A DNA stretch of 64,000 nucleotides from Phaeosaccion multiseriatum (GCA_965112735.1 OZ218953.1:4650001-4714000), one strand, 5' to 3'. Shown: positions 2,284 through 36,295, counted from the stretch's first letter. Translations and numbers: made by a program. The notes: generated by a model from the letters alone, not told the origin.

Positions 2284-4806
2284 ATGGCGTCCTTTGGCAT
2301 CGAGGCGGAGGAGATGGAGGAGGGGGGTGAGCTCTCTTCAATGACGCTGTCTCCTACTCTGCCCCCAGCGTCCCTGCCTCCGAGCCAAGGTCTCCCCGCC
2401 GCCAAACCCCCACCAGCAGCAGCAGCAGCGGCAGCAGACGCTGAAGGACCCCCGACGGACGAGGCCGAAGACAGCAAGGGAGAGGGCGCGAGTGTGGACT
2501 TGGAGCCGAGACCGCAGTCAGCAAGTACAGGTGCGTTAAGTGCGGAACTCTTTCCTTGTGTTCCCTACTCTTACAAGCTCTTGGTCACTATCGTCTGACC
2601 CTGGTGCAGTCTTGGAGGGGATACGACGCTTCGAGCAGGCTCGGCGGCGGCACTTTCAGTCTCAGCTGGAAGCGAACTCCCTCTACTGGGAATCCTTTGT
2701 GGCTCTCGTCAGGCACTCTCAGGCCAATAGCTCGCGATGTAAGGCCTTTGTGAAGGCCAAGATCGCCGCCGGGAGGGCACAAGCGGCCGTCAATTACAGC
2801 ATTCGGTGAGTGGGAGGAGAGTATATGCACAGTGATCCCTGATTCGTGACGATTCTTTGTTCGATGTGCAGAGACACGGTTGAGGGAGACAAACCAGGCA
2901 CCAACAAGGCGAGATTGGAGAATATTAGAAAGGAAGGAACTGCCAGGCGATTGGGGACGCGGCAGCCACAGCAGGAGCACGAGGATGGAGAAAAGCCCAG
3001 GAACGCTCTGGATGAAATGTTTGCGATGGAAGAGAAAGTAAGTCGATAACGTCGATCCTTTGGTTCTCAGCCTCCTGGCCTGTGTTTCACAGCGGCTTTC
3101 CCCCTCCTAGGCTGCCTACGCGTCGGAGCAGCTAAGCAGTAGCTACGAACGGGATGTGATGCCCATCATGACGGACACAATAGACCGAATCAGCCAGGCT
3201 CTCGACGACCTCGTGGAGCAGGCAAGTGGGTGTGTATGGGTGGACGATCTGGTATAGTGGCAGGCCAGGCAGAGGGGAGGGGGCATGCGGCATAATGACC
3301 TTTGCAATCCCCGATGCCTACGTAATCTGGATGTGATTAGCTCTCGAGGCCTTTCTGTATCTTCGTGGGTGTTCGGAGTGTACTTTTTTTGTGGACCTAC
3401 TGTTGACACATCAGCCTGCTGTCCCCTCCTCCTTGTTTCTCGAGCTAAGCACAATCTTTGCTTCCCCCCAGGGTACCGAGCTGCTGTCTGTGGTGACAAA
3501 GCTTGAACTAGGCTGCCAAGACTGTTACGCGGCCTGTGACAGCGGTTCAGCAAGCTCCAGAGAGGGAGAAGGAGGTGGAGCATCTCCAAGCACAGATCCT
3601 TTCCTTGGGGAGGTGAATTACAAGGTTGCGGTCAGAACCCAGCAGCTGGCGTGGGAGCAGATGAGTGAATGTATGGGAGGATTTTTCAGCCGAATGAAGG
3701 ACTTGGAGAGCGAGAGGAGGATATATATTCGGGAAGCGCTGTCTGTCATCTGCAAACGACAGGAAGAGCTGTGGAGGTCGTGTCTACCTCTCAAGGACCC
3801 CGTACTCCTCACGCTTGAGAGGGTTAATGTGGACAGGAGGTACATAGAAGTTGAAATCACCGACTCGACAAGGCAAGGGGCGGCTCGCCTTAAGGCCACT
3901 GGACGAGCCGGAGCGATAGGAGCAGGAGAAGCAGGAGAAGCAGGAGGAGGAGGAGGAGGAGGAGGGCCCGGGGAGGCTGCTTCGCTCAAGAAGGAACACG
4001 CTCGGCTGAACATGGCGTCTCCCCTGGACAGCGCTCTCGTGCAGCACACTCAGTGCGTAGAGAGGAAGGTGTGGTACTAGCTACTCCTCGCCAATCATCC
4101 CCCCCCCCTCCCTTGTTGCACAAGACACTCAGCCCCCCCGCCCCCTACCCCCCCTCATCTCGATCCCGTGCTGTGTGTGTGTGTGTCCTCTGCCTCACTA
4201 TCGCCGCCTCTCTCCGACAGAGCACGAGTGTGCTGGGCCTGACCAAGTGGTGCCCCTGCATTCTTGTGGTCACCAGTCAGGAGATGGTGCATCTCTTCGA
4301 CCTTCCCGTCGGTATAGAGGCGATGGGGGGCGGCAAGAAGGGCTCGCAGGAGGCCTTTATGAAACTCATTCCGCAGCAGCAGGCCACAGATGGCGTGCTG
4401 GGCATCTTCATTAGCGAGGAGCAGCAGCAGCAGCAGCAGCAGTCAGGGGGGGGGGGGGGGAGCAGCCGCAGTCAACAGCAAGGCGAAAGGAGTGGTTGCA
4501 AAGGTGGTCAAGAGTGGTAGTACTGTAGTGGGGAAGAGCAGCCGAAGCCCCGTCAAGCCCCTCTCTCCGACTCTGTCCATCAACCTGCGTACATGTCAGG
4601 TGGATGACGTGACAACGAAGGGGGTGGTGGAGCTCGTGGAAATGGTCAGTCGGAAGGGCGTTATCGCTGCCTTTGGAGTCGGTGCGGCAGCGGTGCGGCA
4701 CTCCCTGCGAGGCGACCCGGCAGACCCGCTGGCTCTGCAGCAGCTGGCCGCTGTGGTGCGGCAATTGGGCGGCAGGATGTCGCAGAGAGGGGGACGGAGC
4801 TCGTGA
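2284..4806 (+). CDS. Coiled-coil (BAR-like) plus PH-domain protein, Slm1-like architecture; multi-exon, apparent frameshift at a G15 run
   Basis: Spliced helical segments (LEGIRRFEQARRRHF..., QQLAWEQMSECMGGFFSRMKDLESERR...) are followed by PH-like strands (CVERK/STSVLGLTKWCPCILVVTSQEMVHLFD...PTLSINL...LQQLAAVV). GC donor CAG|GCAAGT at ~3222. Confidence 0.6.
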
Positions 4807-4926
4807 CCAGCTGTCTGTCCGTGTAGGCACACACATGTAGTTACAATTGTAAGAAAAAAAAACGTGTTGGTGGCTTTTCGACTCACAGATCCGGCTTGGC
4901 AGTTAGATCGTTCGATCGTTCACAAC

Positions 4927-7191
4927 ATGGGATGGGGGGAGGAGCCGAGAGGCTCCGACTACATACCTCTAGAGGACAGCGGGCCGTCCCCAAGAAGGCA
5001 GTCAGTGAGGAGGGTGCTGGTCGGAGCAGCCGTCGTGGTGGGATCTGCAGGGGCGGCGCTGGTGCAGTGGAGTGGAGGGGGTGCTCCCCTGACAGCGGGG
5101 GGGGGAGGGGCAGCAGCAGCGCTGAAGCTCAGTAGTGGTGGCAATCCAAGCAACGGTAGACCGGCAGCGGCAGAGGAAAGCACGTTGGGGCTTGAGGTGT
5201 GGAACGACGACTATGCTCCAGTAAGTAGACATGTCTACCCCTGGGCATTTGTTGCCGAGCCGTACCGCAAGACTCGCCTAAAGGTTACAGGATTAGAAGA
5301 GGGAGAGACCGTGTTGTGGGAAGTGAGTTCAACAGCAGATGACGAGGCTCTACTGCTGGAAGGACTTGAGGAGGAAGGCGCGGAGGTATCCCTGACTTGC
5401 ACAGAGGCCGGCATGATGCTCTTCGTGGACGTGACGGTGATGCCCGCAGCAGGCGTGTCACCGGTGGGTGCAGCCGTAGCAAAAGATTCCTTCGAATACA
5501 GTGAGAGTGGCGAGCAAGAAGGTGCCTCATTGCACTCCTTCCGGGAGGAAGTTGCGTGCAAGTACGTTCGGCGAGAGCTGCGACAGCTTACTGAGAGTGA
5601 CCTCAGTCGCTACCTCGACGCGCTGGAGGTGATGCATCGTGCAGATGCCGACGAAATGAGAGCGACGTTGCTCTCCTCCGTCGGCTCTGAGGAAAAGAGC
5701 ACGGGCACGAGCGGTGCGGCGAGTCGATTCACCAACTACAGGGAACTGACGGTAAAGCACTTGGGGCGCATCACCCTCGACGGTTACACCGCCTTCCACA
5801 ACGGCATGGTATTCCTCACGGCCCACTTTGCCTTCTCGCTGGAGATTGAGCAGAGTCTGCAGGCGCTGGATCCCACCATCGCCCTGCCTTACTGGGACTA
5901 CACGCTGGACTCGGAGCTCTATGGCCGGGAATGGGCCGAGCTGTCCCCGATCTTTTCAGCAGACATGTTTGGCAGCTACCCCGCCGACCCAGGAGCCATT
6001 GGCGGATTGGTCAGCAGTGACGATAAGAGTAGTCGGTGGTGGCGGCTCCCCATCCCGTCGGACGTCAATGAGCCGGAGCACAATGCTTACGGAAGGTTAA
6101 CAGACAGCATCAATCCCAACCCGGCCCGCTGGGTAGAGCGCGGTGCGGAGCTGTGTGGACTGGAGACCAAGGCCCAGTTACCGGGCTGCCACGAGCTCAT
6201 GGGAGTGCTCAAGTCGAGTTCTCTGAGCGAGGCCTCCAAGAGGATCGAGTACGGCTTCCATGGCAACCTACACGCCCTCATTGGAGGCTACTGGGACTGT
6301 CCATACTCACTGGGCAACGTGGTGGAGCGCTTCGGTGACTCGGCCGCTCCGCTGGCAGAGGCACTGGGTATGATCGCCAATACGCTGTGGAGGAGTGTGC
6401 AGATTCGCAACGGTATGACCTGTCCCACCGCGCAGGAGTGTGCGGAAGGCGGCGGCGAGCTCCGAACGGCGTGCAGCTGCCTGTCCGAAGAGATTGACAG
6501 CTTGGCAATAGAAGATTTGCACTTTGCAGATGCCTATGCCTTTTTGGACCGCATGAGCGTCATCGACATGATCTCACACTCTTGGTTCTTCATTGATCTG
6601 ATTGAGTTGGTGGATGACTCACAACTGGGCCTGAAGACGGACTCCGGCAAGGCCCTGCGTTTCCGTGCGCTGTCCGACTCGGGTAACAAGGAGCTGTACG
6701 CCTTCCTGGCTCGCTTCGTCGTCCACCCGGGGAAGATGGCACCCTTTGCGACCCCTCTAGCGGCTACCAACGACCCCATCTTCAGCGCCACGCACAGCGC
6801 CTATCTGCGGGTCATGGGGTCCATGCAGCTCGAGGGGAAGCTCGAGGAAGAGGAATGGGACAAGAGCGATCAAGACGCGGCGCGCCAGCCGGGCACGGGG
6901 CTCCACGACAAGCAGCCCTTCTCGGGCTTTCTGCTGGGGGATGAAAAAGGGGAGGAGTTTTGGTACACGAATCAGGAGCTGCTGCAGATGATGCGGCTGG
7001 AGAACCCGCTGCTGCCCTACGTGTACGCCGATTTTGACTGGGGGAGTTGTGTCGAGGAGACTACTGGTGGTGAGGGTGGTGATGGGGTTGGGGGTGTTGA
7101 CCACGATGATCCTCCTCATACGGATGGTGTTGAGGGTGGTGGGGGTGATGGTGACGGTGTCGGCGCATCCGGCCGAGAAGAAAGAGAGTAA
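4927..7191 (+). CDS. Tyrosinase / type-3 copper protein, N-terminally membrane-anchored, intronless
   Basis: YVRRELRQL entry motif; CuA H..FHNGMVFLTAH and LPYWDY; CuB HGNLH and NDPIFSATH; hydrophobic N-terminal segment VLVGAAVVVGSAGAALV. Confidence 0.9.
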   Translation: MGWGEEPRGSDYIPLEDSGPSPRRQSVRRVLVGAAVVVGSAGAALVQWSGGGAPLTAGGGGAAAALKLSSGGNPSNGRPAAAEESTLGLEVWNDDYAPVSRHVYPWAFVAEPYRKTRLKVTGLEEGETVLWEVSSTADDEALLLEGLEEEGAEVSLTCTEAGMMLFVDVTVMPAAGVSPVGAAVAKDSFEYSESGEQEGASLHSFREEVACKYVRRELRQLTESDLSRYLDALEVMHRADADEMRATLLSSVGSEEKSTGTSGAASRFTNYRELTVKHLGRITLDGYTAFHNGMVFLTAHFAFSLEIEQSLQALDPTIALPYWDYTLDSELYGREWAELSPIFSADMFGSYPADPGAIGGLVSSDDKSSRWWRLPIPSDVNEPEHNAYGRLTDSINPNPARWVERGAELCGLETKAQLPGCHELMGVLKSSSLSEASKRIEYGFHGNLHALIGGYWDCPYSLGNVVERFGDSAAPLAEALGMIANTLWRSVQIRNGMTCPTAQECAEGGGELRTACSCLSEEIDSLAIEDLHFADAYAFLDRMSVIDMISHSWFFIDLIELVDDSQLGLKTDSGKALRFRALSDSGNKELYAFLARFVVHPGKMAPFATPLAATNDPIFSATHSAYLRVMGSMQLEGKLEEEEWDKSDQDAARQPGTGLHDKQPFSGFLLGDEKGEEFWYTNQELLQMMRLENPLLPYVYADFDWGSCVEETTGGEGGDGVGGVDHDDPPHTDGVEGGGGDGDGVGASGREERE

Positions 7192-17450: not shown

Positions 17451-20400
17451 ATGCAACACGAGGTGCTTGCTGCGTGTTTAGGGCACGCCGGCAGCATCAT
17501 CAAGGCTCACCGTACAAACTGTGGAGGCAGCAGCGGTAGCGACTGTGGGGGCAGGCCCGTGTTCATCGTAGACCGCACCATCGACTTTCTCTCGGCGCAA
17601 GAGAGGCAGGCCATCGACAAAATCGTCGTGCTGGGCGGTCATTACCTCCAACTGCAGAGCTTCGCAGAGCCGTACCGCCACAACGGTACTTCCCAGGTTG
17701 CAGCGCCAGCAGCGGCGAGGGCTTCGGGCGCCACAGACCATGGCAAAGCGGGGGGCATGTTTGGATATCTCCTGGCCTCAGCCGCGCAAGCCGGAGGTGC
17801 AGGTGCAGTAGCCGGAGAGTCTCTGCCTCAGCCGTCGAGTCGGCCTCTGCCTCCGTCCTCGGGCGGCAGCCTGTATCTCAGGGCCATGCGGGCGGGCGTG
17901 GAAGAAGTGCTGCTGCGCTACGTGTCCAAGCTGGTGCAGGTGGAGCAGGAGTGCATGGCGGACCCGTCCCTCCCCGTGTCTCACATACACCACAGAACGC
18001 GGGAGTATCAGCTCATCTTCCCGTATCTAGTGCAGGTATGAAAGGTCAACTACTCTGACTACTCTTTCGTGGTGTTGGCGCTGAAGTCCGCTGGCTGTCC
18101 ACCTCTTCCTTTGGACTCGGCTCTTCCGTTCGATCAAGGGCACCAGCGCGGCGACGGGGGCGTGAGGGGGAGGAGCTGTGGAGCCCTGCCGCACCTTGCG
18201 CGTGCTTTTGTTCTGTTCAGCTGTGAATGCACGCCTGTTTGTGCTTCCATTTGGTGCGGAGGGGGGGGGCGCTCCTTCTCTCCCGCTCTATCGGTGGCAG
18301 TTTCTATGCACTTTGTGTCGGCAACTTACAATTCGATTCTCTGCTGTCCGCTTCTCTGATTATCACGTAGGTCTGTGACGTGGCCCAGGAGCGGCGTTTG
18401 AAGGGCGGGGCGCTTCTGCAGCAGCTCTACAGGAGTTCCCGAGTGGGAACACCGGCTGTGCGCAGCACCCTCGAGCGCCTGCTGTGGCACTGCCAACAAG
18501 TTTGGTACAATCAGGTAATATACGGAAGGTGGACGACTCCATGGCCTCACAATGAGTGAACCAACCACCCTTCCCTCTGCGGGTGTGTAAGCATCTCACT
18601 CATGCGGCGTGTTCCCGTATATGTCTGCCTCCCACTCTTACGACCCACTCTTACACTACTTGTTCCTCTCACTCTGTGCCCCCAAGTCTCTAGCGTGGCT
18701 GCTGCACGGTGTGCTTGTGGACCCCCAGCTCGAGTACATGGTGCAATACAATCGCTCCAAGCAGCGCCGCTACGGCCACGCACACGTCGCCGCTCTCATC
18801 GCCGGCAAGGCGACGAACAGCAGCGCAGATGCCACCTATCCTCAGCTGCACCACCCGCAGCAGCATCAGCAGCAGCCGCAGCAGCACTCGCATATAGGAG
18901 GAACAGAAGGGGCCAGTGCGAACAGCGAGACGGCAGAACACGAATGGAACACCGACTACACGCTGAAGCAAAGCATGCGGCCCACTGACTACATTCCTGC
19001 CAAGCTCGCGTATCGAATACTCTTTGTGGGCAAGGCCGTTCGCGTGCTCTTGCGGGTGGGAGGGGCAGGCCATGGGGCAGAGGGGGGAGGAGGGGGGGGG
19101 CTGGCAGGCTTTGCGACGGGCTTTGGAGACACACACCACGCAAGAGAGCGCGGAAGGCGGCGGCGGAGGAGGAGGCCAGCAGGGTATGAGGACGACCGAA
19201 GCGGAAGAAGGACGCGCAGCCGTAGCAGCAGCAGTAGTAGTACCAGCAGCAGCAGCAGCAGCGGTGGTGAGGATGAGGAGGGGAGAGAGGAACGTGACTG
19301 CACCGGAGAAGATGAGGAGCAGCAGGAGCGAGAGGCGCTGGCGCTATTTGCCGAGCAGTGGGAGGGCCTGAAAAGAAGGCCCACTTTCCACTTGCTCTCC
19401 GTGGAGGAGGTGAGTCCGTGCCTTGCTTGAGCTGCACTTGGGCCCAATTATTGCTGTTTTCCCTCGGCTCCTCAAGTCGCTCTCGCTGTCTCTCCCTCTC
19501 CTTCTCTCTCTCAATTGGTGCGATGGGAGGTGCGGGTGGTGGAGGGGAAGGTTCTTTTCAATGCACTGATGTGATTGCCTCTGCAAGGGTCCGAGCAAGG
19601 GAGGGGCTCCGAGTCTGCATCTGTCCCTTTCAGAGTCAATCACCAGCCTCATGCCCCCCTCTCCGATGGTTGGCACCCCACCCCTTGGCACACACACATA
19701 CGCACACACACACATATATACATACGCACACGCACACACGCGCACATCCAGGCTGTGGAGAACATTGCTGATCTGGTGGCGAAGCACTTGTACCGGAGGG
19801 TGGTGGAGCAGGCCAGGCTGCCTCAGCACCTCGCCGCAATCAAGGTGAGAGCATTGATATCAACAAGACGAGGTGGACAGGCAGGCGAGGGAGTAGGAGC
19901 AATTGGTTACTGCCCCCTCCCCTCCTATGTTAAACCAATCAACCAATGAATAGATCGACCGTCTCTCTTAATCTCTCTTCAACTCTCCCTCCCTCCCTCC
20001 CCCCCCTTCCCAGGACTTCATGCTCCTCGGCCATGGTGACCTTTTCCACGCCCTCCTAACCGAGGGGCGAGGCATCATGGTGCATGCCAAGCCCACCGCC
20101 AAAGCTGCCGCTGACCTCAACGCGGGGCCTTATGCGATGGCTGCGAGGGCGTGTCAGCTGGATGAAGATGAGAGCTTTCTGAGGACCCGTCTCGTATTGG
20201 ATTTGCCCTACTTTAGTAAAGGGGACTTCAGGAGCGTGGCAGGCTTTCGAATGGCCGGGGATGCTCGACACTCCATGGTGAGGAGAAGGAGGGTGAGGGG
20301 AGGAGGGAGGGAGGAGTGAGTGGGACCCGTTACACCTGAACAGCTCTACCTTAAACTGAACATTGGCTTCCTTGCTCGCTCGTTTTTGTGTGCTCGCTCG

Positions 20401-23400
20401 AACAAAACAGGATCGGACCTTCGTGACGCTGTGTGGGCTTGACTGGCGGGATGCAGCGGCAGCACAGGCCACTGGAGGGGCGGCAGTCGCAGCGGCGGAC
20501 AATGACTCCTCGCAGGGAGGCCTCTGGTTCGGCAAGAGACGGCAGATGCACAAGGGGTTTCGTAGCTCCTTTTCCTTCCGCTCTACGCCCCTCCAACAGC
20601 GGAAAGACAGGAGCTCCCCCCCCTTCCCCACCTCCACCTCCTCCTCCTCCTCCTCCTCCTCCTCCTCCCCCTCTCCTGCCCCTGGCTCTGCCTCTGCCCC
20701 GGCTTTCATTCCGTCCGGCGTGTCCCTTGTGCTGCAGAGCCACACCTCTCTCCTACTCGGCCAGGAGGGCGCGGCGGGGCTGGGGTCGTGGGGAATCGTC
20801 AATAGCTTGGCCATCTGTCTGGACTTGTCAGGTCAGGGCCCCCCGGGGTGGAAGAGGAAGAGGGAGAGGTGCGGCGGTAGTACCCAGGATGGCGGTACCC
20901 AGGGGGGCGGTACTCAGGGGGGCGGAGATGACGATGGGGATGGGCATGCCCAAGGAAGCGGAGCAGGAGCAAGACAGCAGACGGCAAGGCAGGAGGGACA
21001 AAGACAGGATGCTGCACCCAATCCCAAGCCGCTTCTCTACGTGACGCTCAGCCCGGCGAGGGGTAGCACAGGCACAGGGCGGAGTAAGTCGAGGCAGCGG
21101 GGGCAAGGTCAAGGCCAAGGCGATCGGGGTAGCAGCGGGACTGTTGGTCTTGGCAGTGGGGGAGGAGGAGGGGGCGGAGGGGGAGCTCGTACCCACGTGC
21201 TGCATGGTGGGCGCTCGAGTGGACGGTTACAGAGCGTGGGGAGGGGTGAGCCTACTCGGGTCCTCGCGTCTTGCCCTCTTGAGCCGCCACCGCTGGCCGA
21301 GCAGGCGAATGGGAGAGGAGGAGGACGGAGAAGCAGGGCAGAAGAAGGGCAGGAGTACTCTGTCGTTGTGGAGTACACTCGCCTCACCAAGGCGCAGGCC
21401 CAGGAGCAGCTCGAGAGGCAGCAGGCGGAAGAGAGGATGAGGCAAGGGGGAGGAGGGGGGGAAGGGCTCTCCATCACCATTCGAGACGTCGACTCAGAGC
21501 GGGAGGCGCCTTCAGAGTCGTCAGCGTCATTGAGAGGAGGAGGAAGAGGGCGACAGGCAGGGGGAGGCAGAGGGAAGGGGGGAAGAGGAGGAGGAGGAGG
21601 AGGAGGAGGAGGAGGGGGAGGAGGGGTGGTGGAGGGCATGCTACGCGTGTATGTCAATGACAAAGACAAGAAGACGGCCCCTGCCCTTGAGGTGCCTCTG
21701 TTGCTGCACACTGTCATCGGGCTGCAGGGAGAGGCGGCTTACGTGGGCATCACCGCTGCTGGGGGGGGGGCTAGCAGTCTTCAGCTCACAGAGTGGGGCT
21801 TTTGGAGCTCCAATGAGGTGGGTACACGTATAGGTATATGGGTATGTATGTATATATGGCGTGACGCCTCTCTACCTTCTGGACATGTCGACCCCTCTAC
21901 CTTCTATATCGACCCCTCGATGCTCTCTACATTACCCCTCGGTGCTGTGTACATTACCCCTCAATGCTGTGTACCGACCTTGCCTGAGCCTCTCTACCCT
22001 CTATATCGACCCTTCGATGCTTTTTGTCGACATCCGACATCCCCTGACCCCTTCTTGTCGCCTTCCTTGCCTTCCCCCATTCCTTCCCCATGCCAATACA
22101 TGGTCATGGTCCTAACGCGATGTGGTGTGACAACATGTATACCCGTATACCCAGATCGGCGCCACGGGGGAGGACGGTGAGTGAAAGAGTGGAGAGAAGG
22201 GTCAGGGGTGTCAGGACACAGAGGGAGGTGTGGGGATAGAGTGAGGGATGCACAGGCTTTCGTTTGTACTCTTCTTCTCGCGCCCCTCTACCACTCATTC
22301 ACAGCCCTTCCTGCGCACAATTTTGGTTTCGCTCTTTAACCTCCGGCGTCCCTCCCCTCCCTTGCCTTGCCCCGCCCTTGCCTGTCCCCCCCCCCCTCTC
22401 TCTTGTCGTTGTGTTGGTGCTCCGAACAGTCGCCGACTCCACTCCGAGCCAAGGCTGGGACGCTCTCCAGTTGCACTACCGAGTAGAGTGGCCGTTACAT
22501 TTGGTCCTTTCGCAGGAACATCTGGTGCAGTATAACAGGGTCTTCTCGCTCATGTTCGCAGTCAAGAGAGCCAGCTTCGAGGTATGGATGGATGGATGGC
22601 AATGGATGGATGGGTATGTTGGCACGCAGGAGTTGAGTGAGTAGTGAGTACGCGAAGGAAGGGAAGAGAGGGAACGGGAGCCCCCCCCCCCCTGCTCCTT
22701 GCCCCTCTTCCATCATAGAGACACGCTACACCCTCTGTGCTCTCCCTCTCTCTCTCCCCCATACGCGCCAAATCGTACCATCCCCTTTCCTTCAGATCGA
22801 TCGTCTGTGGCCCTTGCTCATGCAAGGGAGGTATCGGAGACTCTCCCATCAGGACAACGCTTGGCTCATGTACGTATCCATGCATACTCATGTCCATTGA
22901 TACGCGCCCCTCCCTCCCTCCCTCCCCTCTCTCCATATGCGAGACACGTGCTACCACCCCACCCCCCTTTGGCCGGCTTGCATTCCTCCCCCTCTCCATG
23001 GGCGAGACCCCTCCTTCCCACCCATCCCATTGGACCGGCTTGCAGCCCCTGTCCCCTCTCCATATCACCCCCTTTACCCGTTATGGTACCGTAGACTGCC
23101 ATCTCCCCGTTTGATTTTATTTTCCACCACCTACGTTCTCCCCTCTTATATGGCCAGGCCCTTGTGGACAGTGCGATCAAGCATGTCCTTCTTCGTCAAG
23201 AACATCCTGTACTACTTGCAGGTGAGACGGGGTCGTTAAACGTCTCTCTCTCTCTCTTCCTCTCCCTCTCCCTCTCGCTCTCCCTCTTCCCCCCCCCCCT
23301 CTCTCCATCTCTTCCTCTCTGTTCTTTCTCTCCATCTCTCCTCCCCGATCTTTTCTGTCGCTCTCCGTCCCTGTCTCTCTCCCTCCTCCACCTCACTCAC

Positions 23401-24270
23401 TCATTCACTCCCTCAACCAGCCCACTCACTCACTCACCCGCTCACCCTCTCCTCTGCAGCTGGACGCGGTAGAGGCTCAGTACGCACGCCTGCAAGCAGA
23501 TCTCGCTGCAGCGACGGACTACGACACGGCGGAGCTTGTGCACAAGTCTTTTGTGCTCGCCCTGCAACACAAGTGCTTCTTGGATGTTGTTACTGTAAGC
23601 CAGGCCATTCCCAAGGTGAGTGGAGGGGAGAGAGGAGCGGAGGGGAGAGGAGAGGAGCGTCTGTATCTGTATGTGGCTGTGTATGTTTCTGCACGACGAC
23701 ATGACTCACTCACCCACTCACCCACCAACCCACTCACCCATCCACCCACTGACTTACTACCCCCAGGTGTTGCAATGGGTGCACGCCTTTTGTGCGCTTG
23801 CCAACGCATACACAGACGCCTCCCTCATCCCTCACGCACACGTGTGCGCCATACAAACCAATTTCGCCGAGGAGGTGGACTGTTTGCTGGCCATTGTCAG
23901 CAAGGCCGGGGCGGAGGAGCTGACTCTCCGACTCGACTTTAATTCCTTCTTTAGCAGCAGGAGGGACCCGGCGGGTGGAGGAGGAGGAGGAGGAGGAGGA
24001 GGAGGAGGAGGAGGAGGAGGAGGAGGAGGAGGAGGAGGAGGAGGGGGAGGAGGAGGAGGAGGAGGAGGAGGAGGAGGAGGAGGAGGAGGAGGAGGAGGAG
24101 GAGGAGGAGGAGGAGGAGGAGGAGGAGGAGGAGGCGGAGGGGGAGGAGGAGGAGGAGGAGGAGGAGGAGGAGGAGGAGGAGGAGGAGGAGGAAGAAGAGC
24201 AGCAGAAGCGGAAGGAGCAGGAGTAGGAGGAGCCGGTGTAGGGAGGGGCGGGGGGCGAGGCCAATATTGA
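17451..24270 (+). CDS. GCP4: Gamma-tubulin complex component 4 with inserted lectin-like domain, ~11 exons
   Basis: MQHEVLAACLGHAGSI start; SLYLRAM; YIPAKLAYRILFVGKAVRVL; HLAAIK|DFMLLGHGDLF; GWDALQLHYRVEWPLHLV; FFVKNILYYLQ|LDAVEAQY; LTLRLDFNSFF. These are GRIP1/GRIP2 motifs typical of GCP4. Confidence 0.92.
23975..24192. repeat. (GGA)n microsatellite in the last GCP4 exon (poly-Gly)
   Basis: Direct reading, about 70 units. Confidence 0.95.
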
Positions 24271-25368: not shown

Positions 25369-28300
25369 CTAGCTCTTGTTGTTACCCCCGCTATGCCCCG
25401 GTGTGGAGGAGGGGTCGTCCAGCACCTTCCCCTCGAGAAGCAGCTGCTGCGAGTCCCTCTTCTCATACGCCTCCGTGCCATCCATCACCACCCCCTCCGC
25501 GATGCGATGCAATGTTCTCCCCGCAAGACGACGTGCAAACTTCTTGCCAATCGTGCCTGCTCCTGGCGCCATCAAGGGAAGCACGGGTCTCAGTCGCCTG
25601 GCTCCTCGCAGCACGTCGCCTGGGCTCGACATGACGGACGACAAGATGCCTCGATTGGCCACAAACTCATCCTCCACTTCGTCTGCGATGAGCGCGAGTC
25701 TAGCCTCGTGCGCGGTGGCGCCCTTGGTCAAGGGGTTGGCGGGCCCTGAGTCAGAGGCATTCATGAGTATCTTGAGGAGGCGTCGCAGCGCACGAAGGGC
25801 CTCCTTGTCCTCGTTGTTGAGCGCCATGGTCTTCTCGTAGGTAGACACCATGCGATACACCATCATAAAGGGCAACTGAAGCGGCAACATCAGAAGGTTC
25901 GGAGGGCGGTCCGCGCTGGGGCGAAGAGACAGCATGGGGATGGGCGGGTCAGCGATGCGGTCCGTCACCTTGCGCATGGCATGCGCAATCTCCAGATTGA
26001 GTTCCCTGCCCAAAGCGTCCGTCATCCTTGCCATCTCCTCCACAACAAGGTCTTGCACATAGTTGCCCTCCTTGGCGAACAAGAGCTTGATGGCTTCAGC
26101 CGCCACCGGGTCCGCCGTGGGGTCGAAAGCAGCAGACATGGACACCCCAGGACGAGGCAGGAAGCCGCGCAGACGAGACCTGATCCCAGCTCGGGTACCA
26201 GCCCCCGCTGCAGTCAAGTCTGATGGGCGGTTGTTGTTCCCACCGCTGTGGTTCAGGCCCTGCTGTGAGTCGCTGCTGCTACCGCTGCTTCGACCGGCGA
26301 AGGCCTCTGATTCGAAGGTGTCCATCATGAGAATGTTGCCGTCCTTGCGCGAGGCCTCTGCTGCCAGCGCGGTAAAGGCTCTGTATCCCTCGATAATTTC
26401 GTCAAGCTGATCCACATGCAGCACATCTCCCTCCGAGCCGTAGAGAAAGGCCTTGAGCATCGATCGCATTCGCGGCGAGTCCTCCGTGAGCAACCGCCGG
26501 CACATGTACGGGAAGCATTCCTTAACGATGGAGTACGACGGGTCCATGGCCAGTCCGAGCCCCTCCAGCGAGCCGAAGGCCCGGATGATGAGCCCAAAGT
26601 AGGGCGGGATAGCAATGGGGTAGTTGCGCGCCAAGTCTTGTACCTCCTCTCCGACGGACTCAATGGTGATGGTCTGTGCCCCTCCACCCTCGCTGAGTTG
26701 CTCCAGCACGGTGGCGAGGAGTGGCACCACCAGCGCCACCTTGTCCTCGTCCTCGGCAATCTCCTTGGGCACGAACTCGAGGGTGACGAGGTCCTGCAGC
26801 GTAGCGTGATAGTCCTTGGCGATGAGGTGAATCACGTACTCGAGGAGAGCGTAGCGCTGGTCTTCCGTCACCTCACATACCAAGCCGTAGTCGAGCACGG
26901 CGAGGCGGCCGTCTTTCGTCACCAGGAAGTTTCCATAATGCGGGTCTGAGAGGGGTGGAAGGGGTTGATGGTGGGCGGCGAATGCGTAGGCAGGTGAGGT
27001 AGGGAAGAAGAAGTAGGAAGGTAGGGATGGAAGGAAGGAGATCATCGTCACCAGTGAGAGGGAGCGACGAACAAGAAAGAAGCCTGCCTGTCCAGCCTGT
27101 CCACTCATCCACATAAGATCCACAAGTGTAGGCTGCCTCTGCCACTCATTTGGCAACTTATTCACGGGACGAGGCCTTCCACCATGCGCCCACAAGTGGA
27201 GACAGACCATCCCCAACGGCACGGCGCTGCAGGTGAGGGCAATTAGATGAGCGTCAAGAGCGGGTGCTCCCGCACGGTCTCTTACGCTCGTCGTCCCTCC
27301 TTTCCCCTCCCCTCCCCTCCCCTCCCCTCACCTTCCCTTCCCTCCCCCCCCCTCCCCTCCCCTCCCCTCCCCTCCCCTCTCCTCACCGGCATGAAGGAAG
27401 CCGTTCTCCAGCAGCTGTGTGAGGTAGCTGTTGAGCAGAGTGGCCTGAATGGTTGCCATCCTGGCCTTGCCGAGGGGCGACTCAGTCTCAAGGTTGGACA
27501 CCTTCACCCCATCCACCCACTCCATCGACAGTACATAACGTGTGGTCATGCTGCCGTACACCTGCAGTCAGAGGGAGCGACGAAGGTGGTGTGTGTGGGG
27601 GGGTGAAGACGAGGCGAAGGAAAAAGGGTGAGAATGACGGCCTTGCTTGGAATCCTCTCGCACGGTGCCTCGCCCCAATCTCCCACACACTCACTCACTC
27701 ACTGTCTACCACCCCCTGTAAGCAGCTAGCTGCTACTCCCCCCCCCCCCCCCACCCCCCTGCGGGACTCTGTCACCCTCCCCATCCCACGCAACACCACA
27801 CTCCTTCTGGGGCCAACCCTGGGACCTCTGCTCGTGCTCCTCCTCCTCCTCCTCCTCCTCCTCCTCCTCCTCCTCCTCCTCCTCCTCCTCCTCCTCCTCC
27901 TCCTCCTCCTCCTCCTCCTCCTCCTCCTCCTCCTCTTCCTCCCTCCTCCGTTCTTACCCCAGGCACGATGATGGCTTCGCCCAAAGCCTCGCTCTTGCTC
28001 AGATCACTGGCAAAGCGAGCAGCGTTGCGCGCCTCCTGCATGTAGTCAAGCTCATCCATGAACCGCACGGCCCACGAGTCAATCATGGCTCGGAAACCAA
28101 GCGCGGCGTCACGCACAAAGCCCACATTGGAGATAATGTTGAGGATGATGCGCATGACAAATAAGTCACGTGTAACCGTAAAGAGCACCCCGGGTCGCTG
28201 CACCTTGACGGCAACGGACTCCCCCGTGGATTTGAGTGTGGCTCTGTACACCTGCCCCAGGGAGGCGGCGGCAATAGGCTTGTCGAACACCGATACATCG

Positions 28301-29598
28301 GCATATACATTCTCCAGTTTGTCCCCGAGCTCCCTCTCCAAGATGATCCTCGCCTCCCGAGCGGAGAAGGGCGGCACCTCATCTTGCAGCTTGCCCATCT
28401 CGATAATGTATGGTTGAGGCAGAATGTCGGGCCGCAGACTGGCGCCCTGCCCTACTTTAATAAAGGCCGGGCCATTCTGCGCCGTGAGGATTCGCATCTG
28501 CTCGGCGCGCTGGGGCATGTTCTCAATCCATTTCTCGCTGACAATGTCCACGAGAAGGGAGATGACGAAGGAGATGAGCATGTAGCTCACTTCGCTAGTG
28601 CGAGTCAACACAATGAGAGGGTGGCGGGAGTAAAACTCGCCCAACGCGTCCAAGTCGTAGTCGCGGGGCAGGTTCTCCATGTCCTGCTTAAGGCACTCGT
28701 CGTTGAAGAAGCCCGTCAGCGTCTGCATGACAGTGAAGGTGCCGAGCACCGCCAAGAGCCCCACGGCCATTTGCGCCATCTCCGCAGGGAGTCCAATCGC
28801 GGTGAAGAAGCCTTCCGCCATGTGCAGGGCGGGGCGCAGCAAGTCCTCGGCGACCTTGGCCACATTCTCCGTGGTTTCCAGCATGGCGTGAGTGACGGGG
28901 TTGGCGGCAAGCGCGTCTGTCACCATGTGGCCCATGCGCTCCGCAACGGTCGAGATGTGCCCCGTAACGGTTTGGTCGGCCATCTGCCCCAGTAGCTGAA
29001 GTTGCTCGTGGTTGAGCACGCTCAGCAGGACGGGCGAGGCGTCGCCGGTCATGCCCTGATAGCCGTCCACGTAGGCTGCCATCCTTTGCCCCACCTCGTC
29101 GGTCATGTCGAAGCCCATGCCCAAGCCCCCCTCCGCCAGGCCCATGGAGAGCGCGGAGGAAGAAGTACCCCTGCTGCCGTCTTTGCGGCTCCTGCTTCTA
29201 CTGCCTCCCATGCCATTTCTTCCAATTCTGCAATTTAGGCATCGTTTCACAGCACTAGAGCTTACCGAACCCCCACCAGCGCCAGTACTGCTCCCGCTCC
29301 TGGTACCCCAACCACTAGTCTTGCCCTTGTCTCCCCCCGTCGCCCACGCTGCATTGCTGCTGCCCGCGCGGGTGTGCAGTGCCGGAGCCACGAGCGGTTC
29401 TACAAGGAACCCCCTGCCCTGTTGAGCTAGCGCCCCGAGGGCCGCGGCGAACAGGGATGTTTTGGCCACCTTACGCCATGGGCCGGACGCCGCGGCCCGT
29501 GGCGCTTCTGTGGAGGAGTGGAACTTGGCTCCCTGACTTGGCCCCTGCTGCTGCGGCTGCCGCCGCGGCCGCTGCGGCTGGTGCTGCCCTACAGCCAT
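25369..29598 (-). CDS. ABC1/UbiB atypical kinase (ABC1K), probably plastid-targeted; exons ~29598-27958, 27561-27387, 26946-25369
   Basis: GPAFIKVGQ, PIAAASLGQVY, VAVKVQRP, ELDYMQEA, MEWVDG, GFLHA|DPHYGN, LDYGL, PPYFGLIIRAF; signal ending GRG-FL. Confidence 0.93.
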
Positions 29599-30046
29599 GG
29601 TAGCGCCCGAAGCCAGCAGCACGGGTGGGAAGAGACGGTGGATCAGATCACACGCAGATCTCGTCCCCGCTGAAACTCGTTCTGAGGTGGATGACAAGAA
29701 ACAAGTGCAAGGGCGCCGCACTTTCCTTGGAAGTTCCTCTCCTTCCTCCTCCTAATACACCGTGCCACTTTACTGATTTGCTGTTGCTCAGCTGCGCAGG
29801 CTTTGGCTCCACCTGCACGGTCGTTATCCACAAAAAAAAAAAAAAAAAAAAAGGGTGGTGAAATGAAGCGTTTCATGTTTCATGGTTTCACCCTCTACCT
29901 CGACTTTGAAAATAGAACTCCATTTTGGCCTCTCCTCTATTTTTTTTTCTTTTCCCCTTCTTACAATCATCCACCCTCCACCTCCAGCTTCATACAGACC
30001 TCTGCCTCTCTCTCTACTTCACTCTCCATCCTTCTTTCTTCTCAAG

Positions 30047-33687: not shown

Positions 33688-34041
33688 GCAAGGACAAAGA
33701 GGCCCGCACTGACTGACTGAATGACTGACTGACTGAGTGAGTGGGTCAGTAAGTGAGTGAGTGAGTGAGTGACTTCATCGTACAGCGTACCTTGAAAATG
33801 GTGTGGTTGGTGGTGCACGTCAAGACAGGGGACGTCATAATGTCCTCTGCGGTGATCTCGTCCTCCACCATGGCCATGACGCTCTCCACAACCTCCTTCA
33901 GCACCTCCTCCGGCAGCACTCGGTCCTCTGAGCTCACAGCCACACCCCCTGCCTCCACCACCTTCTTCTTGTATTGCTTCTTGCTCTCAGCGGGCTGGGG
34001 TACACTGTCCTTACTACTACTGCTGCTGCTACTACTGCTAA

Positions 34042-34086
<45 letters not shown>

Positions 34087-34199
34087 CGCCGCCGCTACCT
34101 CCCCCTCCTTCTGCTGCGTCTGCTGCTTTGCTACTACTTACACTTACTTCTCTGACCCCCCCACTGCCACTACTACTACCACTACTACTACTACTGCTG

Positions 34200-34240
<41 letters not shown>

Positions 34241-35445
34241 GTTACCACTACTACTACTAACACTGCTGCTGCTATTGCTAATTTCACTGAAACTCCATAC
34301 ACTGTGCGCCTCGGCATCCCTCAGGGCCTCAATCACGCGAGCGTCGTCCAAGCGAAAGGAGGCAGCACTAGCTTTCTTGTGCCCACCTCCCCCGTACGTG
34401 GCGCAAACCTTGTTGAGGTCCACAGCCTCGCTGACCCACGACTTTGCCCTTCCGATCAGGCACATATTCCTCGCCTCTTTCCCCTTGCGCTGTGCAAACA
34501 CTGTAGCGAGGACGAAAATGTCGGCGTTGGTGATGTCGAGGATGTTCTGGGCAACACGGGCCAGCCCGTTCACGTAACCGTCGCTGGTGTATCGTTGGTT
34601 TGTGGAGTTGGTGAAGAGGGAGAGAAGCAGCAGCAGCAGCACGAGCCGGGAGAGGGGGGGGGGCGAGAGAAGACAATGAGGAGGGGAACAGAGGAGGTCA
34701 CGAGATGAGGAATAAGACAAGTCTCCTGCAATGTCGTTGCGGAACCAAGGGGGTGCCTGCTACGCTTGACCTCTCTCTCCCGACAAGCACCCTCCACCCC
34801 CTCGAAGTATTATGGGACGCACACACAAAAACACGCTTCTCCCTCCTGTGCTCTCCTCCTCCTCCTCCTCCTCCTCCTCCTCCTCCTGCTGCTGCTGCTG
34901 CTGCCACCCACTGGGCGCCACTTACGTATGTATGAGAGCTGTGGCGATGGTGGCACCGTTGTGACTTGTCCGATTGAGGTTTCCAAAGGCGTCCGACATG
35001 CAGAGCTGCTGCTCGGGAGACAGCCCAGCGTGTCCGTACTCTGCGATGGCCGCCTGGCTCGCCCCACATCCCATCAGCCACGCCAATGCTGCTGCGTCAC
35101 GGCCGGTGGCGCTGTCGAAAGTAAGGCTACCGGTGTCGGAGTGTATCCCGAGGCAAAGCAGAGTGGCCTCCGCCTCGCCCACCTTCAAGCCGCTCTTCTG
35201 CAGCATCTCCGTGATGATGGTGGTCACGCTACCCACCTATCGTGACCATGAACAGCAACAGATTCACGATAGTGAGCGAGAGAGCGAGCGATGGAGTGGG
35301 CGAGCAAGGCAAGTAAGCATGCAAGGCACAGACGCAAGGACACAACACGCAAAGTCGAGGTGGGGCAAGGGGCTGTCTCAGAGCCTTGTTTGATGTTGTC
35401 CCAGAGAGGACATGCATTTCTCCAACGTGACGTGAGAGATCGCAG

Positions 35446-35480
<35 letters not shown>

Positions 35481-36295
35481 GTCTGTCTGTCTGCCTCCCT
35501 CTCCCTTTCCGTCTTTCTCTCTCTCTCTCCCCCTCCTTTCATCTCCCTCACCTTCTCTATGACCAGGTTGGTGGCCTCAATGTCGGTGGTCATTTCCACG
35601 TGGTGGTCGTACACGTGCACCTCCTCAGCCTCGGCCACAAGGTCTGCGGCAGGCCCCACGCGGTCCAACCGCTGAGCATCTACCAAGCCCACGCGCTTCA
35701 CGCTCCCTCTCCTAATCTCCTTTAAACCCTGGATTGGGTAAAGGTTCTTGTGCAGTGCCAAGAAGGCGTGCACGGTCGGATGCGCCCCCATCGGCAGGCA
35801 CACGTAAGCGGGAGTATCGGGATCCTCCTGCGCCCACAGCTTGGCCAATCCCACAGCTGCCGCCAACGAATCGAAATCTGCAGTGGTGTGGGTGAGTACC
35901 ACGTTCATGGTGTCGTTCACATAGCCGCCTCCCACCGTAATAGGCACGGCCGATCTTACTTCAGCAGCCTCCTTCGGTACCAGTCTTTGGACAGTCCGGT
36001 GCTGAGGCTCGGAAGGAATGGCGTAAAGAACCGTAGAGTCGTGCTGCCGCGCTCCGCCGTGCTCGCCACTCCTGCTACCCTGCTGCTGCCAACTCCTCCC
36101 ACCACCCCCTCCCTCCAACAGTAGCGCGGAGGGGACAAACGCCGCGCAGCTGTGTCCTCCGTGCTGCTGCGGAAGGAGGTAGCACAACAAAGCTAGGGCC
36201 GTGGACGCCGCAGCTGCCTTGCTCAGCGCTCTGCCCCTGCTCAAGGCCCTGCCCATGCTGCTGCCGTCGCGTTTCCTTATCCGCGCAGAGGCCAT
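31974..36295 (-). CDS. Plastid-targeted DHH-DHHA1 phosphoesterase with a CBS pair
   Basis: THTTADFDS, VDAQ, YDHH, LGIHSDTGSL, YGGGGHKKAS; CBS motifs AEDIMTSPV, GMPVV, GRLPVV and LLGLITRTDLL; signal ending CAA-FVP. Confidence 0.88.
33612..33687. repeat. (AAC)n microsatellite, intronic
   Basis: Direct reading. Confidence 0.9.

Follow-up and report, generated by a model that had tools for sequence, protein, structure and literature searches.

Gamma-tubulin complex protein 4 (GCP4) is among the most conserved and minimal parts of the microtubule nucleator, and the lineage-specific variation known in it consists of short loops. The GCP4 gene on a 64,000-nt stretch of the Phaeosaccion multiseriatum genome (GCA_965112735.1, OZ218953.1:4650001-4714000; this whole stretch is referred to as the window) encodes some 500 additional residues within its GRIP2 domain, and raises the question of where this insert came from and what it might do there. 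Sequence comparison identifies the insert as homologous to L-type lectins, and the same insert is found in GCP4 proteins from other lineages. We consider it reasonably probable that an old and maintained lectin-fold insertion has lost its sugar site and now serves the gamma-tubulin ring complex as a module for protein contacts.

Identity of the host gene

The gene lies at positions 17451-24270 on the plus strand, as do all of its parts given below, in GC-rich (about 57-60 % guanine plus cytosine), intron-bearing eukaryotic sequence. Its 12 exons were placed at 17451-18035, 18371-18514, 18687-19409 and 19752-19844 (exons 1-4); 20014-20277, 20411-21817, 22155-22176 and 22430-22581 (exons 5-8); and 22796-22869, 23158-23221, 23460-23615 and 23767-24270, the last ending with the stop codon (exons 9-12). 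Splice junctions were predicted from the sequence, read by eye and checked by script; every junction is GT-AG, and the spliced product of 1395 amino acids has no internal stop codon.

Pfam identified GCP_N_terminal (PF17681, GRIP1; 39 bits on 17451-18035 and 41 bits on 18687-19409; cut-off 29.4) and GCP_C_terminal (PF04130, GRIP2; 53 bits on 22432-22581, E 4e-14, profile positions 88-131; cut-off 25.8). Among all PDB sequences only GCP4 chains matched the first exon (E 2e-9), and a full-length orthologue of 854 amino acids (P0008) matched GCP4 at E 7e-67, GCP3 at 1e-19 and the others at 1e-19 or weaker. By these comparisons the host is GCP4 and not GCP2, 3, 5 or 6, as a preliminary description of the stretch had proposed. 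Vertebrate GCP4 (TUBGCP4; PDB 3RIP and 6V6S chain I) belongs to the same family and orthology group, and is colinear with the window protein through GRIP1 and GRIP2, from MIHELLLALSG (MQHEVLAACLG in the window, where GRIP1 starts at residue 1 without an N-terminal extension) to the C-terminal LRLDFN. It differs in having a short loop at approximately 412-444, where the window protein has about 500 residues and compact orthologues about 240, while the window protein adds large low-complexity inserts in GRIP1 and a poly-glycine tail of about 70 residues. The GRIP2 domain of the window protein was 30-41 % identical to those of the relatives found.

Position and layout of the insert

The insert lies between a GRIP2 strand ending in LRTRLVLD and GWDALQLHYRVEWPLHL, at the site of a human loop of about 25-33 residues, and comprises the tail of exon 5 and the whole of exon 6. 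Exon 5 (20014-20277) encodes the start of GRIP2 (DFMLLGHGDLF...LRTRLVLD), aligning with human GCP4 359-421, and then, at 20197-20277, the first lectin strands (LDLPYFSKGDFRSVAGFRMAGDARHSM), with YFSKGDFRSVAGFRMAGDA at the end of the exon. In every orthologue this tail is aligned to the beginning of the insert, and in lectin domains to the N-terminal strand. Exon 6 (20411-21817) encodes in order GGLWFGKRRQMHKGFRSSFSF, SGVSLVLQ, GLGSWGIVNSLAICLD and YSVVVEY, followed by LRVYVND..PALEVPL, AYVGITAAGGG and LTEWGF. The preliminary description had listed these lectin-like peptides in this order in the spliced GCP4 frame, and had noted that the first lectin strands share an exon with GRIP2; all of the peptides were present and the shared exon was borne out by the human alignment.

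The 469 codons of exon 6 would supply the rest of the L-type-lectin-like domain, as blocks of core strands separated by four long low-complexity loops. Core strands at 20510-20596 (GGLWFGKRRQMHKGFRSSFSFRS) have near-invariant G, W and F columns in common with lectins, and were modelled by AlphaFold as strands (exon residues 36-39 and 49-60) with a predicted local distance difference test (pLDDT) of 86-91. Loop 1 (20597-20707), which is Ser/Pro-rich, contains (CCT)16, has a period of 3 and is missing in compact orthologues. Within the insert, conservation is highest in the next core, IPSGVSLVLQ...GLGSWGIVNSLAICLDLSG (20708-20833), which was compared column by column with lectins and has predicted strands at 103-109 and 132-138. 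It is followed by loop 2 (20834-21022), Gly/Gln/Asp-rich with three copies of a 15-nt repeat (period 15), by the core strand PLLYVTLS (21023-21058; predicted strand 208-214), which aligns with the L-x-V strands of orthologues, and by loop 3 (21059-21250; exon residues 221-277), which is Gly/Arg/Ser-rich. The core at 21251-21445 consists of TRVLASC, EYSVVVEYTRL and then a predicted helix (KAQAQEQLERQQAEERMRQ), with strands at 283-289 and 314-324, a helix at 327-345 and a block pLDDT of 85-88; its YSVVVEY was aligned to the H-x-x-RVEY strand of lectins. Loop 4 (21446-21628; exon residues 350-404) is Gly-rich, with (GAG)35 and a period of 3, and precedes the C-terminal core MLRVYVNDKDKKTAPALEVPLLLHTVIGLQGEAAYVGITAAGGGASSLQLTEWGFWSSNE (21629-21817), which has a pLDDT of 81-94, a BLASTP match at 2e-9 and an hhalign probability of 92.6 %. 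All four loops have a pLDDT below 50.

Approximately 260 of the 469 residues of exon 6 belong to Ser/Pro-, Gly/Gln- or Gly/Arg-rich loops, which sit exactly between strands, where compact orthologues have short turns. They resemble the other coding repeats of the gene, namely the poly-Ser/Arg of exon 3 and the poly-Gly tail encoded by (GGA)85, and from their sequence are probably translated, disordered trinucleotide-repeat expansions. The possibility that the loops are extra introns was judged unlikely: like the coding repeats they are purine- and G-rich, in contrast to the C/T-rich introns, and the periods of their repeats are divisible by 3.

GCP4 proteins carrying the same insert

A HMMER search of exon 20411-21817 against 1.8 billion representative proteins returned four matches (P0001-P0004). 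P0001, from the ochrophyte alga Chrysoparadoxa australica (CAM9404819.1), is a GCP with the insert at the same place, and P0003, a GCP found in a foraminifer-associated metagenome on a eukaryotic contig that belongs to no bin, has it at the same site. Besides their queries, three word-index homologue searches recovered only P0008 and P0009 (a GCP of 1402 amino acids), both with the insert, and a metagenome scan found only the PJEL contig again. The same insert is thus present in four other GCP4 proteins, from C. australica and three metagenomic eukaryotes.

The preliminary description regarded the insert as a true in-frame fusion inside GRIP2, at a point where human GCP4 has only a short loop. 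This is upheld independently of splice prediction, since P0003, P0008 and P0009 each contain GRIP2, insert and GRIP2 in one uninterrupted open reading frame (ORF; L001 4710-6353, L003 6282-8846 and L005 278-4486). In C. australica the insert is joined to GRIP2 sequence within a common exon at either end. The alignment of P0008 with human GCP4 pairs residues 4-396 with 3-411 and 640-850 with 445-656, so that it breaks at human 412-444, which about 243 residues replace. Exon 6 of the window can be aligned, one block after another, to the compact inserts of approximately 240 residues in the orthologues; the insert loops of P0009, like those of the window, are greatly inflated.

A further case was read by eye in GCP4 of Phytophthora nicotianae (KUF76976, 850 amino acids), which is printed in the supplement of PMC10454807 with the insert unremarked. 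In what looks by eye like the same insert, this sequence has GSVWWRHAQMDGHSFSSEFNL, MLAVVVNDV..QIDLQQVLNL and GEYWMGLGFSS..LTDWSL, followed by LWHALNLRCNVRWPLQL. Among the other sequences of that supplement, again by eye, Arabidopsis (about 45 residues) and human have short loops, and the sequences labelled as diatom GCP4 are without lectin motifs; either diatoms may have lost the insert, or these sequences may not be true GCP4 orthologues.

Pairwise identity was 18-35 % for the insert and 25-46 % for the surrounding GRIP2, which suggests that the insert is under constraint comparable to that on its host domain. Its best-conserved stretch is GG-x-SLVLQ...LG-x-GG-x-GLGS-x-GI-x-x-S-x-AVCL. Two cysteines, in V-x-L-C (20424-20435) and A-V/I-C-L (20810-20821), are both found in the window, P0001, P0003 and P0008, while P0009 and, by eye, Phytophthora have neither; this paired presence or absence hints that the two lie close together in the folded domain. 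In contig PJEL010010922.1 (L001), GCP4 is split into ORFs at 3575-4312 (GRIP1) and 4647-6353 (GRIP2 with the insert), about 335 nt apart, through either one intron or an assembly frameshift.

The insert had been thought undescribed. This stands for the literature searched, in which none of the publications on GCP4, Spc97 and gamma-tubulin complexes, including those on stramenopiles and Phytophthora, described a lectin-like domain in a GCP. The insert is not unique to this genome, given the four GCP4s and, by eye, Phytophthora, and is present, unremarked, among deposited stramenopile GCP4 sequences. It is a clade-level trait, which automatic Pfam annotation of those sequences flags faintly at most.

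Inclusion of exon 6 in the mature transcript

Exon 6 is 1407 nt long, with phase 0 at both ends, and the frame is kept when it is left out and 20277 is joined to 22155. It could therefore be argued that exon 6 lies outside the mature GCP4 mRNA, as intronic sequence, cassette or relic, and that the real protein has this shorter join. Such an account would also fit the sequence-derived gene model, the whole exon being without a Pfam match, and the codon-position GC content of 0.67/0.63/0.66, which has no clear periodicity; the flat profile is attributed to GGN/AGC-type repeats. It is nevertheless very improbable. The first lectin strands of exon 5 would be orphaned, and the strands of exon 6 align block by block with orthologue inserts in uninterrupted ORFs. 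The exon has no stop codon in frame versus 4-15 in the other five frames, and in 20000 simulations from a first-order Markov model a frame stayed open over this length only twice (odds of 1e-4). Its tandem repeats have periods of 3, 15 and 3, all multiples of 3, whereas most intron repeats have periods of 22, 16, 26, 4, 8 or such. Skipping could occur as an isoform, but would likewise orphan the exon 5 strands and conflicts with the orthologues. Antisense and out-of-frame ORFs over the exon were rejected as genes, having no Pfam family.

The junction upstream of exon 6 is consistent with inclusion of the exon: the intron (20278-20410, 133 nt, gtgagg...acag, phase 0) is predicted to join 20277 to 20411 with eight residues between G-x-A and V-x-L-C, the same spacing as in the orthologues. 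As the exon is repeat-rich and skippable in frame, gene predictors may drop it, and stramenopile GCP4 models deserve checking.

Relationship to L-type lectins

The domains most like the insert are L-type lectins (Pfam PF00139 and PF18483), a family that includes legume lectins, bacterial surface lectin repeats, Emp46p/Emp47p and ERGIC-53. In the library-wide HMMER search the two remaining matches to exon 6 were P0002 (E 3e-6), a protein of 3085 amino acids in a bacterial gene neighbourhood whose repeats pass Pfam Lectin_legB (PF00139, 55 bits; cut-off 26.3), and P0004 (E 3.6e-4), a lectin-EGF protein. BLASTP matched exon 6 to one P0002 repeat at E 2e-9, with 47 % identity across 57 residues, and to a second segment in colinear order. 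When an insert-only profile was aligned with a lectin-only profile by hhalign, the probability of 92.6 % applied to the C-terminal 57 columns only. Three orthologue inserts matched Pfam Lectin_L-type_dom (PF18483) at E 6e-6 to 1e-4 (22-26 bits; cut-off 78.3), and the window core 20708-20833 gave a sub-threshold match to profile positions 68-102 (15 bits, E 0.019). The curated Pfam thresholds for L-type lectins were not reached by the insert in the window or in the orthologues, and phmmer of exon 20411-21817 against PDB sequences returned only poly-Gly linker noise.

Structure prediction pointed in the same direction. The AlphaFold2 model of the P0008 insert has 13 strands, with a pLDDT of 77 and a predicted template modelling score (pTM) of 0.81. 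In a Foldseek search of the PDB its top 50 matches were all legume lectins or Emp47p, with E from 5e-8, template modelling (TM) scores of 0.46-0.60, nearly all of them at least 0.51, and about 225-235 of 241 columns covered. In the model of exon 6, confident strands (36-60, 103-109, 132-138, 208-214, 283-289, 314-324 and 409-466) alternate with four segments of pLDDT below 50, and the top of its Foldseek list consisted exclusively of L-type lectins (an M. jannaschii lectin domain, Emp46p/47p, ERGIC-53 and legume lectins) at target-normalised TM scores of 0.5-0.58. The insert is thus predicted to be a beta-sandwich (jelly-roll) with the strand order of L-type lectins. It also has in common with them the motifs G-x-x-W, GF-x-x-F-x-F, x-G-x-x-(L/F)V(L/I)Q, GI-x-x-S-x-A-(V/I), L-x-VY-x-(N/D)D, A-(Y/W)-VG-(I/L)-TA-x-x-GG and W-x-F. 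The fold assignment of the preliminary description is therefore supported by the sequence matches (E 3e-6 and 2e-9) and by predicted models that match only L-type lectins.

The lectin-EGF protein (P0004/P0005, from ENA and JGI metagenomes) has a poly-Gly/Arg expansion in the loop that matches the (GAG)35 loop of the window. This may be a low-complexity coincidence or reflect a related GC-rich organism.

Loss of the canonical sugar and metal site

Site columns were compared with the domains of P0002 and P0004, which retain A-D-G and V-E-F-D...N...D...H. In all five GCP4 inserts G, S or A stands in place of the sugar-binding Asp and C or Q in place of Glu, the first metal ligand, and the metal loop (N/D/H) is unrecognisable. 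The replacements pointed out earlier for the window, PSG for the lectin ADG and AICLD for AVEFD, are exact in this column comparison. Since these residues are replaced in all copies, canonical sugar binding by the insert has probably been lost, and the domain would have a lectin fold while probably not being a lectin. It departs from L-type lectins in these residues and in falling below the Pfam thresholds, and also in setting: L-type lectins are secreted or lumenal, whereas the insert is embedded in a cytosolic helical protein.

Could the insert still bind a ligand at a non-canonical site, whether a glycan, an O-GlcNAc-type group or a nucleotide, and so couple that ligand to microtubule nucleation or to attachment at the microtubule-organizing centre (MTOC)? 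It keeps the fold and the Gly-rich loop B, and L-type lectin domains with non-sugar ligands are known, one example being DORN1, a plant receptor whose lectin domain binds ATP (PMC5008829). The loop A Asp, the Glu/Asp/Asn/Asp/His metal ligands and the whole metal loop are, however, missing in each of the five copies, which makes such a role improbable. GCP4 is, moreover, cytosolic, and classical glycans are absent from that compartment.

Proposed history and role of the insert

Under the favoured reading, a whole L-type lectin beta-sandwich would have been inserted into a GRIP2 surface loop, replacing the loop corresponding to human residues of about 412-444. The insertion would be old and maintained; it occupies the same site in an ochrophyte, three metagenomic eukaryotes and, by eye, the oomycete Phytophthora. 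The canonical carbohydrate Asp and the Mn/Ca ligands are missing from every copy, and the Gly-rich loop LG-x-GG-x-GLGS-x-GI, on the former ligand face, is the best-conserved part. In the window genome, in-frame trinucleotide-repeat expansion would then have inflated the loops between strands, with the strands kept. The former ligand face may dock a lineage-specific partner, or may brace a neighbouring spoke or gamma-tubulin.

Three observations lend indirect support to a role of the insert in protein contacts on the gamma-tubulin ring complex: conservation at the level of GRIP2, concentrated on the former ligand face, the proximity of Leu404 and the precedent of a fungal insertion. Leu404 of GCP4, eight residues upstream of the insert site, is in a modelled gamma-tubulin interface (PMC3655011). 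The fungal insertion is in the GRIP2 domain of Spc98 (GCP3), at N626-L656 in C. albicans and K674-H713 in S. cerevisiae; it bridges to the GRIP2 domain of the neighbouring Spc97, sets how far apart the gamma-tubulins lie, and is needed for normal geometry of the complex, with function impaired when it is deleted (PMC7658347; PMC8099430). Both insertions are lineage-specific and located in a GCP GRIP2 domain, and for Spc98 the structural role has been demonstrated. The Spc98 insertion differs in being a strand or loop of approximately 30-40 residues in GCP3, whereas the GCP4 insert would be a folded domain, and the two are likened in general description.

Reuse of the fold itself is familiar from other settings. 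Legume arcelins and alpha-amylase inhibitors retain the lectin fold, have lost sugar binding, have shortened or altered metal and sugar loops, and are reused for protein binding. They are stand-alone secreted seed defence proteins, unlike a domain inserted in a cytoskeletal protein.

A rather unlikely alternative is that the insert is a tolerated passenger, a lectin-domain sequence that entered a permissive GRIP2 loop in an early stramenopile and remained folded but neutral. The site is a variable loop elsewhere (about 25 residues in human and about 45 in Arabidopsis), this gene accommodates very large stretches of low-complexity sequence elsewhere, the insert loops are inflated in P0009 and the window, and the diatom-labelled GCP4 sequences of PMC10454807, by eye without lectin motifs, hint that the insert may be dispensable. 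A neutral passenger is hard to reconcile with an insert nearly as conserved as GRIP2 over very divergent lineages, or with a conservation peak that falls in a surface Gly-rich loop and not only in the core strands.

Several results weigh against a lectin-derived contact module. The Pfam scan of the whole exon 20411-21817 returned no family, so that the Pfam evidence foreseen in the preliminary description is confined to the sub-threshold PF18483 matches of the orthologue inserts and the window core. An insert-only profile searched against the PDB had a legume lectin at the top, but at E 0.29, and the best Foldseek E for the exon 6 model was a weak 0.07, which can be ascribed to half of that model being disordered loop. 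True lectin rows were present in both AlphaFold alignments, so the predicted fold may have been steered. The proposed function is read from conservation and loss of the sugar site, the position in the ring (outer face, lumen or between spokes) and the partner are postulated, and the gene model in this genome is a prediction from its sequence.

A further-reaching proposal, which we regard as distinctly unlikely, is that the architecture of the stramenopile gamma-tubulin ring complex differs from that in animals and fungi, with the GCP4 lectin fold integral to the structure as an inter-spoke brace or as a dock for a lineage-specific MTOC tether or activator. It would assume the roles that GCP5/6 insertions, the Spc98 insertion or CM1/NEDD1-type factors have in other groups, its sugar face having been re-tooled for a conserved peptide or small ligand.

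A folded domain of a carbohydrate-binding family, kept in the gamma-tubulin-binding half of GCP4 across oomycete, ochrophyte and metagenome lineages, suggests that the nucleation template is built or anchored differently in a eukaryotic group that takes in major algae and crop pathogens. The insert offers a concrete, deletable handle on MTOC attachment and on regulation of the gamma-tubulin ring complex beyond animals and fungi, and would be a clean case of a lectin fold reused in the cytosol after loss of its sugar site.

Other features of the gene and its surroundings

GRIP2 resumes in exon 8 (22430-22581; SQGWDALQLHYRVEWPLHLVLSQEHLVQYNRVFSLMFAVKRASFE), which is 66 % identical to P0008 and carries the GCP_C_terminal match. 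Between exons 6 and 8 a 22-nt micro-exon (22155-22176; IGATGED plus 1 nt) is proposed, which restores the phase from exon 6 to exon 8. Its splice signals are strong (acceptor tatacccag, donor gtgagt), the adjoining introns are 337 and 253 nt, and with it all introns of the gene measure 133-342 nt. A weaker donor at 21821 (gtacac), spliced to 22430 across a 608-nt intron, is also in frame and may be used instead. The exon 6 frame stays open for 121 more codons across 21818-22180, within an uninterrupted ORF of 605 amino acids (20363-22180), and the proposed intron after exon 6 holds 2.9 copies of a 22-nt repeat at 21912-21974.

Low-complexity sequence occurs elsewhere in the gene. Exon 3 contains a large insertion (18790-19330) between conserved GRIP1 blocks, in the order His/Gln-rich, Gly-rich, Arg-rich, poly-Ser and acidic, which is missing from P0008 and P0001. 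A (GGA)85 tract at 23977-24232 encodes a poly-glycine run of approximately 70 residues before the C-terminus, past the conserved LRLDFNSFF.

Rfam and tRNA scans of the window gave no matches. Neighbouring long ORFs, without an evident link to GCP4, have a tyrosinase domain (4864-7191, plus strand), ABC1 atypical-kinase domains (25369-29721, minus strand) and DHH/DHHA1 domains (33746-36295, minus strand); the ABC1 domains span two ORFs, probably one split gene. The introns of the GCP4 gene contain CA-, CTCA- and CACC-type microsatellites (19689-19747, 23392-23445 and 23707-23750) and long C/T-rich tracts, and they have a strong negative GC skew, in contrast to the G-rich coding repeats.

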